DNA of 64,000 bases from Auanema rhodensis (GCA_964057225.1 OZ059894.1:17918001-17982000); one strand, 5' to 3'; positions 32,497 through 37,683 are shown, counted from the first letter of the stretch. Notes: a model not told the origin generated them from the sequence alone. Program-made: numbers and translations.

Positions 32497-34854
32497 ATTG
32501 TTTATTTCGTTAATAGGCTTTGAATATTGCTCAAGTTTTATATGTTGTTATTATTCTGTTATAAATATATTTTTGAATTATAATACGATTTATGAATAAT
32601 TTTTGAATAACCTAATGTAGCGTTGTTTACATCATAAGATAACAAGAACCCGCTGACCCGACCTGTCCTATCGAGGAGTTCTGTCAAGGAAATGTCTCTT
32701 TCTCTTAGTATTTTGATGCTTTGCTCTTTGAAATGAGAGCAGTATAAGACATTCTATAATTTTTGAATTGATTGTTTGTGATACCTCGTCCAACCGGTCA
32801 AAGAGTGTTTGTGACGTACTGAGATGAAGAAGTTCATAATAATAATTTTCAGATATGATGATCTTAAAACAGGATTAGTCGTTCCCTTAGCAAAGATTTG
32901 CCCAAAACAGATTTCGAGACAATAAAATATGAATTATAATCGACAATTGAACTTTCGCTGTAAATATTTTACTAATAGAGTGACAATTTGCTACTATTAA
33001 TGTTGAGCGAATGAAGTACACTGTTTTTAAAATATTTATGTGTGAATCTCTTTGGATCATCTTTTTGTCTTTTTTCTCGTATTTATGCGTGTATGATCGT
33101 TATCAAATTACTGTAAGAATAAGCGTAAAACTTGGCGAACAAGCTATTCTTTCAGTTTCTTAAAAGCTTTGATGTATAGGATATTTGCTGAAAAGACGCA
33201 GAAAAGTGGAAGGGTGGAGTTTTGATGGCCTTTGGATGAGTGTATACCTTTAGGATCGCGATGTGATTTGTGTTTTACCATCTCGCCTCTCTAAATCCCA
33301 ACAATCTCTCTTTAACTTCTTATCCCAGATGCTATAAGGAATAGGATAGGAAGGTAAATGAGGGCGGAGCTAAAACTATCCTTAGTGAGTGCAGTTGTAC
33401 CGGATCAGTGCATTATCCTACTTCACCCCAGACCGGCTTGCCTAGTAATTTCGCTGGCTATCCTTATTGCTCTCTTGCTCCCAGGCTTTGACGACCTGGT
33501 CATTGACTTGTGTCCGTCAAATATAAACATCAATCATACATTCTGATTCGTGTTCTTTATTTCCATCTAACAAAGCTACTTTCTATATAAAGAAATTTTA
33601 GGTGGAAATGACGATCCGGTTCTACTTTTCTTTGGATTATTTTCTTAATCATCAATTCGAAAATTTCTTAATCATCAATAAATGTGATTGAAAGAACTTT
33701 TCTCTTTTCTGAACTTAGTTTAAAAGTTTCATTATAACTTCGATCGTTACTCATTCTCTCTATTTTTGTCATATTTCCTACTCGAGGAAAGTTTGATGAT
33801 GAATCTTATCTTCTGTTTTATGTCTTTTCTGCCTAGCGGTTCTTTCTATTTGTGTAAAAAGAACTAGACTTCCGGAGACCAATTCTTACTTCAAAATTTT
33901 AGGATAAGGTGAAAAAAATCACTTTCTTGCCATATTCTAACTATTAGAAAAGTTTTAATTCTTTATTAATATTAGAATGTTTAAAAAATCGCAGGCATGC
34001 GATAAAAATTTTACTTATCTATGCTATTCTTTGCAATTTGGTCTTTAACGACATGTTTGCAGTGCATATGCAGTTTCAATTTTTGATACCAAATTTATAT
34101 GTGATAATCAAGAGGGAATTCATATTTTGCGATAGATGTTTGACCTTTTTGTTCAGGGAGAATAGCTAAATTAAGCATCAGTAAACAAGCCTAAATTTTC
34201 GGTTTTTCTAGTCGGCTAAATTCTGACCAATAGCCAGTTGCTTGGTTGCGATATGTTACACAAGACATTCAACAGCTAAAGAAATTGGCGTCACAATTTT
34301 CATAGATATCATTTTTAAAAAAATATTTGAGTGCTGACCTTAGCTTATCTTACTTTTTGGCATTTTGAACAAAGTTCACTTATACTTTTATATTGAATGA
34401 TAGTCTTAGTGAATTTATACATTGATCTTTTCTTTTTTTTTGCGATCAAAAATAAAAAGACGTTGTAGGACAGTAGATGGTGGGGGAGCAAATAACCTTT
34501 CATTCTCCCACTAAACGTTCTAATAGCCCCTTTTACTCATTTTTTGAGTGTTTATTTTATTTCAAATAAACATATTTTTTTGAAATAGAAAAGGCTGTGT
34601 TTAGAATTCTTTCCCATTTTTCTTTGTGTCGTTGAAATGCGGTGGTGCTGTGTGGTGAATGGGCGGACGACCATCTAATTGGCTGATAAAACGGATTACC
34701 TTGTCCATTTTACTGGCATTCTTCTCCACCATTAGACTGTCAAATATTCTCTTTAATTTTATTGCTATTTCATTCGTGTTATGTTCACATTTATTTTTTG
34801 TTGTGATTTTTACATGTCCGAAAAGTTAAAGACATAATTTTCTTCCGATTTCAG

Positions 34855-35325
34855 CTTTCTTCGCTTAAGCCAAGTTCATCGTCAACTTGCTTGAGCGTTT
34901 GAAACCAATCGACGGTCTCCTCGTTGCCAGAAAATCAAGTCAATTAATTCTCACATTGAACGGATAGCGGCTTCCGCATCCCAAAAGGTTAGCTAATTTT
35001 AGCATCCTGAAACTTCGATATATTTTGGCCGATCAAAAACATAACAAATATATGTTTGGTCTATCATCTATCTTCTTATGAACCTAGAGTTATATTCGTC
35101 ATTATACAGTGTTTTGAAGTGATGACGTAGTAACTACCACAACAGATCATGTTCATGAGTGGGGATAAAAGGACATTTGTGTTCAAAAAACAAAAAATAA
35201 AACATATATAATACTTAAGATTATAATTGAATCTTCAGGCTTCCGTGCGTCGACGACCCGGAACAGTTAACAGCTCCTGCTATTTCATTTTTGACCCACT
35301 CCGCTCCGGAAAGCCTCCTCCCTAA
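34855..35325 (+). promoter_or_regulatory. Spliced ODC 5' leader carrying an AUG-less uORF ending KPPP-stop
   Basis: Exon 34855-34987 (tttcag acceptor, AAG|gttagc donor) and exon from 35239 (cttcag) join in phase 0; stop-free frame from 34895 to TAA 35323-35325; no ATG in the spliced leader. Confidence 0.7.
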
Positions 35326-35343
35326 TTACCTCAAACTCCAATC

Positions 35344-36981
35344 ATGATTTCTAACATGGAACTTATCGGCGAGCACAAAGTAAGTCAAATGACATAACCT
35401 ATATAACGTCAAAGTTCATCCCCTTTATTTAAGGTTGGTATCTTGGACCACACCATCAATACTGTTGCTCTTGCTCGCGAAATCGCCAACAACAAAGATA
35501 CCCAAGAGAATGACGAGGCCTTCATGCTCATCAATTTGGACATAATTGTGGAACGTTTCCGATTATGGAAGAGAGAACTACCAATGGTCGAAGTAAGTAA
35601 TCAAACATCATAACAAAGCTCAAATTCAAATTTTAGCCTTTCTATGCTGTAAAATGCAACACTGATAAAGTTCTTGTTCGCGTTCTTGCTTCCCTTGGAA
35701 CAGGATTCGACTGTGCCAGTCGGGAAGAAATTGATATTGTAGGATTATTTATATAGCCTTTTCTTGATTATGCGCCTCTTTCTACAGGTTATGGATATGG
35801 GTGTTAACGCAGATAGAGTTATTTATGCAAATCCATGCAAAACTCGTTCTTTCATAGCACATGCTCGTGAACGAGAAGTCAAAATGATGACTTTCGATAA
35901 CTGTGAAGAACTCGAGAAAATAGCTAAAATATATCCTGATGCCGAGTTAGTTATATAGTTTATAATATGTGATTATAAGTTTAATTTCAGGTTGATTTTG
36001 CGCATTGCTGTCTCTGATCCTACAGCCACATGTCCATTGAACTTGAAGTTTGGTGCTGATCCCGTTTCTGCTGCTCCCCAACTTCTTAAACGAGCTCAAC
36101 AACTTGGAGTTAACGTTATTGGTATCAGTTTCCATGTCGGTTCTGGATGTAATGATGCTACGGCATACAACAACGCTATTGCACATTGCAGAACTCTTTT
36201 CGACATTGGTAGGTTTGCAAGACTCCTTAAGTATAAGACCAGTTATTTTCCAGGAAAAGGCCTTGGTTTCAACATGAAAGTTTTGGACATGGGTGGTGGG
36301 TTCCCTGGTGCCGATCATCATATGCCATTTGAAAAAGTTAGATAATTTATGATAGACAAGTTTAATTTATCATTTCTAGATAGCTGAAGTGATAAGAACA
36401 AGCCTCGAGGAGTATTTTCCTCTTGACCAAATCCGTTTCATTGCGGAGCCTGGCCGATTTTTCGCTGCTGGCCCATTCTCTCTGGTTTGCAATGTTATTC
36501 ATGCAACTGAGGTCCAGGCCGAGAAAATCTCAAAGAATTCCAACGACGCTGATAAAAAAGGAATGATGTACTATTTGAATGATGGAGTATATGGATCGTT
36601 CAACTGTATTCTTTTTGATCACGTTCAACCTGTTGGCCGTCCTCTGTTTGTAAGACATTCTTTTATTTTTTCAAAAAGCATTCTGCGCATTACAGAACAT
36701 TGAAACAGAAGAAGTATTAACAACTGTTTGGGGCCCAACATGCGATAGTATGGACAAAATCGAAGATATGAAAATTATGAACCGTCTCCGTGTAGGAGAT
36801 TGGGTTCTATATGAGAACATGGGTGCATACACTAGTGCTGCATCAACTACATTCAATGGTTTCCAAAGACCAACTCCTATCTATGTGATGGGTCGTAATC
36901 AATGGTAAATAAATCAAAATAGTTGATCAGTTTGAACTTGTTTATTTCAGGAAGAAAATTGCTAACTCATCTTATGTTTAA
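35344..36981 (+). CDS. odc-1: Ornithine decarboxylase
   Basis: PLP lysine PFYAVKCN; FDCAS; IYANPCK; KFGA; SFHVGSG; LDMGGGFPG; IAEPGRF; [10 protein letters not shown]; catalytic WGPTCDSMD; NMGAYT...FNGF; TAA 36979-36981. Confidence 0.98.
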
Positions 36982-37683
36982 TGCAGTGGAGGTTTTATAC
37001 CCAAGTTTATTTAATTGATTTGAGTATTTTAAAGCATTTCATTTAGTATGTATTTTAAAATAAATATTATTTATATTTGTCTAAATTTAACAATTTATAA
37101 TAATAATCATGAAAAGATTTACAGATTAATAATGTTTTGTGACGCAATTTTATCTCAATTCGATTTTCAAGACATCTAAGCTGCTTTCCTCGCATTTGCC
37201 CGTCATCCAGTGAGACAATGCTATTTTAATGAGAAATGTTTCTTCTTTCTATAGATAGACAAAACAGTTTATAAATAGAATTAGCTTTCAACTCTAGGAA
37301 CGATTTAAGCAGATTTCGATGTTCCAAGGTACTTACGTCAAAGTATTCAGATGGATGTTTAATCGTAACGTGGTCATTTAACTTGTATTGAAACAATGAA
37401 TCGGCTGACATTTATCAATATTTCATATTTATGTATTGATGTGTAGACATATTAATAATGAAATTTTTTTATCAAATAATTATTAAAAGACAATTATAAA
37501 TTGAAATAATTAACAAAGATTAGTTGAACAGACCCGTAGTTGTTGAAGCTTAATTTTCAAAGATGTAAGATAACCTGTACCATAACTGTTTTCTAGGAAC
37601 AAAACAATTGTTTGTTAGTATAATTAATTGGATTAATTAATTGTTAACTGTATTTGAATATTAATGAAAATATAGTTAGAGTG

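Follow-up and report, generated by a model that had tools for sequence, protein, structure and literature searches.

An AUG-less, probably AUC-initiated coding region ending in Pro-Pro-Pro in the leader of Auanema rhodensis ODC mRNA: a likely nematode ortholog of the animal uCC

The mRNAs of ODC homologs carry in their leaders a coding region called the uCC, which was reportedly described by Ivanov and colleagues in 2008. It is about 50 codons long in animals and, as an example of start-codon choice governed by an elongation stall, is among the best understood. Members of the uCC family are AUG-less, mostly AUU-initiated (UUG and ACG are also used) and 22-100 codons in length (PMC2811004). A pair of adjacent prolines lies close to their C-terminus, and their repression of the main ORF is strengthened by spermidine (PMC2811004, PMC4458265). 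At the Pro-Pro-Trp (PPW) motif ribosomes pause in a manner that depends on polyamines and requires eIF5A, and the pause increases initiation at the weak start upstream (PMC8705083, PMC9082881), and polyamine dependence has been shown experimentally for the uCC of AZIN1 (PMC2811004, PMC8705083). The canonical uCC of invertebrate ODC, the "six phyla" group, ends PPW-(D/E)-P-S-stop (PMC2811004). In C. elegans, a study from 2026 refers to "uCC, uORF or ORF1" regions for odc-1, smd-1, oaz-1 and the AZIN homolog F53F10.2 (PMC13578949). Further removed are the AMD1 MAGDIS and plant AdoMetDC uORFs, the small one in plants ending Pro-Ser (PMC2811004). Like the element described below they are cis-acting uORFs on a polyamine-pathway mRNA with a polyamine-responsive stall, but they are AUG-initiated, encode unrelated peptides (of 6 codons in mammals) and belong to a different gene.

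The window analyzed here, a stretch of 64,000 nucleotides of A. rhodensis DNA, contains an ODC gene for which RNA contigs give the following coding structure.

35344-36982, + strand: ODC coding region, 9 exons, 421-aa product
35344-35379, 35434-35592, 35637-35738, + strand: ODC exons 1-3
35788-35945, 35991-36208, 36254-36336, + strand: ODC exons 4-6
36380-36649, 36696-36904, 36951-36982, + strand: ODC exons 7-9

Every coding junction is present in RNA contigs (that of the last intron in X1 and X2 only), which fixes the nine-exon gene model, and the leader is joined to the coding sequence within RNA contigs. The 421-aa product shows 84% identity with its counterpart in Auanema sp. JU1783 and is 60-71% identical to full-length ODCs of strongylids, Caenorhabditis and Pristionchus; ODC homologs have the domains PF02784 and PF00278. 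It contains the PLP-lysine motif PFYAVKCN (residue 66), the catalytic cysteine motif GPTCD (residue 355) and likewise HVGSGC, GGGFPG and EPGR. By these retained motifs, the gene is judged to be a true, catalytically competent ODC and not an antizyme inhibitor. The last intron (36905-36950) is spliced in the X1 and X2 contigs, and the X3 and X4 contigs end before it. Retention of this intron would give an ORF ending ...NQW-stop, through a TAA formed at the donor site; an alternative ODC C-terminus is possible.

Upstream of the coding region lie the features of the leader and of the putative uCC.

34850-34854, + strand: trans-splice acceptor (ttcag), SL1 joining between 34854 and 34855
34855-34987, + strand: ODC leader exon 1, 133 nt, spanned by RNA contigs of 4 runs
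34931-34936, + strand: AAA-AUC, probable near-cognate uCC start by conservation, AUC at 34934-34936
34934-34987, + strand: uCC codons 1-18, IKSINSHIERIAASASQK, by translation; frame open in all species compared
34988-35238, + strand: ODC leader intron, 251 nt, GT..AG, phase 0 inside the uCC, from RNA contigs
35239 onward, + strand: ODC leader exon 2, joined in phase to exon 1
35239-35325, + strand: uCC codons 19-46 and UAA; C-terminal 15 residues CYFIFDPLRSGKPPP
35314-35322, + strand: Pro-Pro-Pro codons CCT CCT CCC, predicted eIF5A-dependent stall site
35323-35325, + strand: uCC stop UAA, directly after PPP
35326-35343, + strand: spacer from the uCC stop to the ODC AUG, 18 nt

Four public RNA runs, in the form of assembled contigs, cover the locus, and one contig from each of the four lacks 251 nt bounded by GT..AG, in agreement with a junction of 34987 to 35239. 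The 5' ends of the RNA contigs fall at 34849-34853. Three contigs start at 34849, with a single mismatch over tttcag and 4-5 unaligned letters at the 5' end; SL1 ends in ...TTTGAG at its 3' side, so that such a one-mismatch start over the genomic tttcag is expected. In transcript contigs of orthologs, CCAAGTTTGAG is joined directly to the equivalent first base of the leader. The 5' end of the ODC mRNA fits SL1 trans-splicing between 34854 and 34855. The two leader exons have GC contents of 0.45 and 0.52, compared with 0.29 in the intron and 0.33 in the upstream DNA. The intron occupies the same place in Auanema sp. JU1783, and C. remanei has no leader intron. An earlier note, made from the DNA alone, had placed a probable trans-splice site at 34854 and joined 34855-34987 in phase 0 to an exon beginning at 35239, giving a GC-richer, AUG-less, stop-free frame of 59 codons. 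The acceptor agrees with the contig ends and the SL1-bearing orthologs, the junction with one contig in each of the 4 runs, and the frame with the sequence.

The spliced leader is 238 nt long without any ATG. Its stop-free run of 59 codons ends GGA AAG CCT CCT CCC TAA, the UAA being 18 nt before the ODC ATG (35344) and in the same frame; the uCC itself, from AUC through the third proline, is 46 codons. In 20,000 dinucleotide-preserving shuffles of this leader, the probability of having no ATG was 0.17 and that of an open run of 59 or more codons closed by a stop was 0.29; the two coincided with a probability of 0.049. The window alone is weak evidence, barely above chance (P about 0.05), and the case thus rests on conservation across species.

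Orthologs were collected by searching one ODC exon against protein representatives and following the matches through a list of nematode ODCs to their loci or transcript contigs. This provided 11 further leaders, with species labels taken from the best ODC matches: Auanema sp. JU1783, a strongylid, three Caenorhabditis, Mesorhabditis belari, Pristionchus pacificus, Strongyloides stercoralis and three unplaced rhabditids, one of which is diplogastrid-like and has a 5'-truncated leader. All 12 leaders, the window included (236-335 nt), lack AUG. The distances from the AUC or AUU to the PPx end are 138, 138, 138, 156, 159, 153, 144, 141, 159 and 138 nt, a multiple of 3 in each of these ten leaders despite six distinct lengths. 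No stop interrupts the frame in any of the ten, and the remaining two frames usually have stops. Measured from the start to PP[W/P] or SPW, the spacing is 46-53 codons (11 leaders, including the window). Between the window and JU1783 the uCC aligns without indels at 78% identity; the differences are distributed 9/6/16 over the three codon positions, and third-position identity is 65%, compared with 38% at the 4-fold sites of the ODC coding sequence, which are near saturation. In the last 15 codons, 7 are changed, 6 of them synonymously and 1 conservatively, as read off the alignment. Substitutions between the two Auanema species lean towards synonymous changes. Only the beginning and the last 12-15 residues of the peptide are well conserved, and its middle drifts. 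The frame conservation and synonymous bias for which the earlier note had proposed to look across nematodes were both found, with the frame kept in 12 leaders, in-frame indels and synonymous-leaning changes. It is this comparison across species that makes the case for an ODC uCC convincing.

Conservation also points to the start codon. Eleven nematode leaders, including that of the window, contain an Ile codon that is in frame and has A-rich surroundings. Seven have cagAAA-AUC at leader nt 78-81, and the variants are ccgaaaAUC in Mesorhabditis, tcaaaaAUC in Strongyloides, ttgaaaAUC in Pristionchus and agagaAUU in one rhabditid. The uCC start is thus likely to be the AUC at 34934 and not an AUU, and we infer its use from conservation only; AUC is a weak near-cognate codon. 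Of the candidate starts named in the earlier note, AAA-AUC at 34934, which it listed first, is the conserved one, while AUU at 34943, AUU at 34955 and AUA at 34964 are not conserved beyond close relatives and were rejected.

At the other end, the terminal motif varies by lineage as follows.

Caenorhabditis: uCC end APPWS-stop or APPWT-stop
Mesorhabditis, Strongyloides and one rhabditid: uCC end KPPW-stop
Two further nematode species: uCC end PPW followed by 6-7 residues
P. pacificus: uCC end SPWV-stop, in a leader predicted from GT-AG sites only
Two Auanema species: uCC ends KPPP-stop and KPPPG-stop
Strongylid: EPPP followed by 13 more codons, the stop overlapping the main AUG

The third residue of the motif is Pro in the window, in JU1783 and in the strongylid (PPP in strongylids comes from one transcript set, L002-L009); PPW occurs in eight leaders and SPW in P. 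pacificus. The motif PP[W/P] is kept despite changes in codon choice, for example from CCT to CCG, and is followed by tails of 0-13 unrelated residues. A conserved PPP-stop, suggested in the earlier note as a check, was therefore not found as such; what is kept is the PP[W/P] end, or SPW in P. pacificus. Similarly, its description of a nematode version with PPP-stop rather than PPW suits this lineage, but not nematodes generally, most of which end in PPW. Since P. pacificus would have only SPW in its predicted leader, a strict Pro-Pro requirement is apparently not universal. That leader (L014, 3387-3845) is predicted to have three exons, with the 5' stem-loop H1 described below, ttgAAA-AUC and a uCC end of GLSPWV-stop. 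The position of the stop relative to the main ORF is less constant. As the earlier note pointed out, the UAA in the window is 18 nt before the ODC AUG and in frame with it, but in relatives the uCC stop is in frame 0, 1 or 2 with the AUG at a distance of -1 to 98 nt, and between the Auanema species the 18-nt spacer contains indels and is not conserved as coding sequence. The in-frame placement of the stop is consequently judged to be incidental. In L012 (247-262), the called gene begins at a second Met (MELIG...), and an upstream in-frame ATG gives MISQMELIG, which matches other nematode ODC N-termini; the uCC stop is then 2 nt before the true start.

Canonical uCCs outside nematodes were obtained from a metagenome scan with an ODC alignment, which returned many non-nematode ODC transcripts; in their leaders, open frames with PPW close to the end were sought. 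These leaders contain AUG-less ORFs ending PPW-DPS, PPW-EPS or PPW-DPC that start with cagAAA-AUU, tggaaaAUU, gacaaaAUU and similar sequences, 43-47 codons before the PPW end. A Cys lies 15 residues before the PPx end in the window and in L036, L039, L047 and L057 (CYF... compared with CLF...). The shared start context, spacing, PPx end and Cys indicate that the nematode element is orthologous to the animal uCC. The window element occupies the leader of an ODC homolog, is AUG-less with a near-cognate start, shows coding conservation and has the length and the adjacent prolines of the family. Two family features differ: the third residue is Pro (CCC) in place of the Trp of Pro-Pro-Trp, and in place of x-Pro-Ser-stop the stop directly follows PPP. 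Taken together, the comparison argues strongly that the window element is a genuine, selectively maintained uCC ortholog. It is best regarded as a member of the known family and not as a separate invention, with three derived features: AUU has become AUC, nematodes in general have lost the x-Pro-Ser tail, and in Auanema and a strongylid P has taken the place of W. The earlier note was right in calling it a nematode version of the ODC/AZIN uCC, since frame, start context, spacing and PPx end match canonical uCCs. Its view of the peptide as distinct is not upheld, because other nematodes retain PPW and the Cys position is common to canonical uCCs.

Set against its closest counterparts, the element combines inherited and altered parts. 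With the uCC of vertebrate AZIN1 it shares an AUG-less leader region of ~50 codons, a near-cognate Ile start in a favorable context, C-terminal adjacent prolines and a position just upstream of the main AUG of an ODC-homolog mRNA, and the same stall-queuing logic would be expected. AZIN1 has AUU, PPW and an x-Pro-Ser tail, whereas the window has AUC, PPP and an immediate stop; moreover, its host gene is ODC itself, an intron interrupts the uCC, the mRNA receives SL1 by trans-splicing, its leader has an additional 5' stem-loop and the uCC is known here from sequence. The canonical invertebrate examples compared (L036, L039, L043, L047, L051 and L057) are in the same gene and have cagAAA-AUY and 43-47 codons (46 in the window), with the Cys in four of the six; relative to them, the window has W changed to P, has lost the three-codon tail and has no recognizable QGGF or SPEG motif in its mid-region. 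The other nematode ODC uCCs (Caenorhabditis, Mesorhabditis, Strongyloides, the diplogastrid-like species and Pristionchus) are AUG-less and share SL1, AAA-AUC, the PPx end and two hairpins, H1 and H3, but end APPWS/T-stop, KPPW-stop or SPWV-stop where the window has KPPP-stop. The non-nematode ODC contigs with a canonical uCC come from metatranscriptomes or metagenomes (L033, L035, L036, L037, L039, L040 and likewise L043, L046, L047, L051, L053, L057); their flavors are ...NAEPPWDPS-stop and ...PEPPWDPC-stop, with an AAA-AUU start 43-47 codons upstream. L068 and L081 have a longer type, possibly fungal, that ends PPW-LPGTLGLV-stop or PPW-HPGTDGLV-stop.

The two hairpins in the leader RNA are located as follows.

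34862-34897, + strand: H1, 14-bp stem-loop shortly 3' of the SL1 junction, from folding
34962-34981, + strand: H3, hairpin in the uCC (GGAU-A-GCGG, loop CUU, CCGC-AUCC), from covariation

The two Auanema species share 87% identity in the first 79 nt of the leader, before the AUC, without codon periodicity. H1 was found there when leader nt 1-50 were folded (-16.9 kcal/mol, z = -4.5). In 10 of 10 nematode leaders the corresponding segment forms a stem-loop of 12-15 bp (-13 to -18 kcal/mol, z-scores of -2.3 to -4.5), and the stem sequences differ widely. In four alignable species, RNAalifold gives 14 pairs for H1, 3 of them compensatory, and a covariance model built from these four matches the same four and the P. 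pacificus leader (E = 0.03). A MAFFT alignment of H1 from 10 species yielded no consensus structure, the sequences being too different, and support across all species therefore consists of independent single-sequence folds together with a non-nematode control. In that control, the 68-80 nt before the AUU were folded in ten uCC leaders; only one gave a stable fold, the remaining nine having z of -1.0 to +1.9, and H1 accordingly looks nematode-specific. It is conserved in position and strength, not in sequence, and always ends ...GCG followed by UUU or UUC. Its coordinates in the other leaders are L001 2553-2588, L002 19-53, L010 8-43, L011 13-50, L013 2732-2768, L012 10-45, L015 15-46, L017 7894-7935, L018 53-85 and L014 3417-3461. 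H1 may throttle 43S loading. No Rfam family matched the ODC leader.

H3 (alignment A1 columns 115-134) begins 28 nt after the AUC, and this offset led to its rejection as a Kozak-type hairpin, which would be about 14 nt after the start. It has 7 pairs with 84% of cells paired, 2 of the pairs being compensatory, and its covariation score was matched by one in 500 shuffles. The residues encoded by H3 vary (AAS, AFN, AAP) while the pairing stays, suggesting a constraint at the RNA level, so that some of the uCC's N-terminal half is probably constrained as RNA and not as peptide. The conserved 5' stem-loop H1, which is unreported, and the natural swap from PPW to PPP appear to be modestly new parts of this system.

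Translation of the uCC, stalling and the response to polyamines and eIF5A are features that we infer from the family. On an SL1-trans-spliced ODC mRNA with its 238-nt AUG-less leader, scanning 43S complexes would pass the stable stem-loop H1 and meet the weak AAA-AUC at 34934, where most would leak on to the ODC AUG. The few ribosomes initiating at AUC would cross the junction of the leader exons and, after translating 46 codons, arrive at K-P-P-P-UAA, where both termination and the formation of Pro-Pro bonds would require hypusinated eIF5A. At high polyamine levels, with the action of eIF5A impeded, ribosomes would stall about 20 nt before the ODC AUG and block scanning. The queue behind the stall would lengthen the dwell time over the AUC, with more entry into the uCC and less ODC. 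The near constancy of the distance from start to stall (138-159 nt) fits a queue of about five ribosomes, and the natural variation of nematode uCCs may support the queuing model: the device appears to survive with AUC for AUU and PPP or SPW for PPW, the start-to-stall spacing being kept. By analogy with AZIN1, the uCC probably works in the same way, as a polyamine/eIF5A feedback on ODC.

Whether the open frame matters at all is the first point on which other explanations differ. The leader might be conserved only as RNA, as a structure or protein-binding site, with the open frame an untranslated by-product. The near-identity of the first 79 nt without codon periodicity, the conserved hairpins H1 and H3 and a third-position identity in the uCC (65%) above the neutral 38% would suit such an explanation. 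It is nevertheless quite unlikely, because the length differences from AUC to PPx are all multiples of 3, the frame is stop-free in 10 of 10 species in which the other frames have stops, synonymous changes dominate the C-terminal 15 codons, and PP[W/P] is kept as codon choice shifts. If the frame is translated, its product could in principle act in trans as a micropeptide, as might be expected from a conserved small ORF of 46-59 codons, but only its two ends, the start and the final 12-15 residues, are conserved, with almost free divergence between them. Conserved ends with a free middle are typical of cis-acting nascent-peptide or stall uORFs, and a trans-acting role is very improbable. An N-terminally extended ODC isoform, made from a near-cognate start by readthrough of the UAA, is suggested by the window itself, where the uCC and the ODC AUG share a frame and a single UAA lies between them. 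In relatives the uCC takes any of the three frames and its end ranges from a 1-nt overlap with the AUG to 98 nt ahead of it, and the indel-bearing spacer is not coding-conserved between the Auanema species; an extension by readthrough is ruled out by this unconserved frame relation and is scarcely credible.

A closer competitor accepts a translated, inhibitory uCC and makes it a constitutive damper, or a general sensor of eIF5A hypusination or proline, instead of a polyamine feedback. PPP-stop is a generic eIF5A-dependent motif. Moreover, in C. elegans, Ribo-seq of a polyamine-transporter mutant gave changes in odc-1 translation that were inconsistent across replicates (PMC13578949), and polyamine homeostasis in this species has been argued to rely mainly on transport (PMC13222480). 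Against a mere damper, the element is specific to ODC-homolog mRNAs across animals, and the orthologous uCC of AZIN1 is polyamine-dependent (PMC2811004, PMC8705083). This alternative is considered unlikely; long conservation on ODC-homolog mRNAs makes feedback within the pathway the best explanation, and polyamine/eIF5A feedback is the reading preferred here. More tentatively, the nematode ODC sensor may have been rebuilt from several parts, with H1 metering 43S loading, the AUC, an internal hairpin and a swappable PPW/PPP/SPW stall. If that doubtful proposal were true, the PPP-stop found in Auanema and strongylids would amount to a natural experiment in motif swapping, with Trp and the PS tail dispensable, the sensor would need only an eIF5A-dependent stall ~46 codons (roughly 5 ribosome lengths) from a weak start, and H1 would be a previously undescribed nematode-specific part that sets queue dynamics on a trans-spliced mRNA. 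C. elegans odc-1 and Auanema offer genetically tractable systems for whole-animal sensing of eIF5A and polyamines.

Recognition of uCCs also improves the annotation of ODC gene models. Because the frame is open and AUG-less, leader or uCC exons have been taken up as false N-terminal extensions of ODC in P0172 (Heterorhabditis bacteriophora) and P0186 (M. spiculigera). The same artefact is seen in P0185 and P0270 (Mesorhabditis belari), the M. belari model splicing around the KPPW-stop. In the Heterorhabditis model, ...CQKIKPIARDTRIAASATIQ is fused to ODC exon 2.
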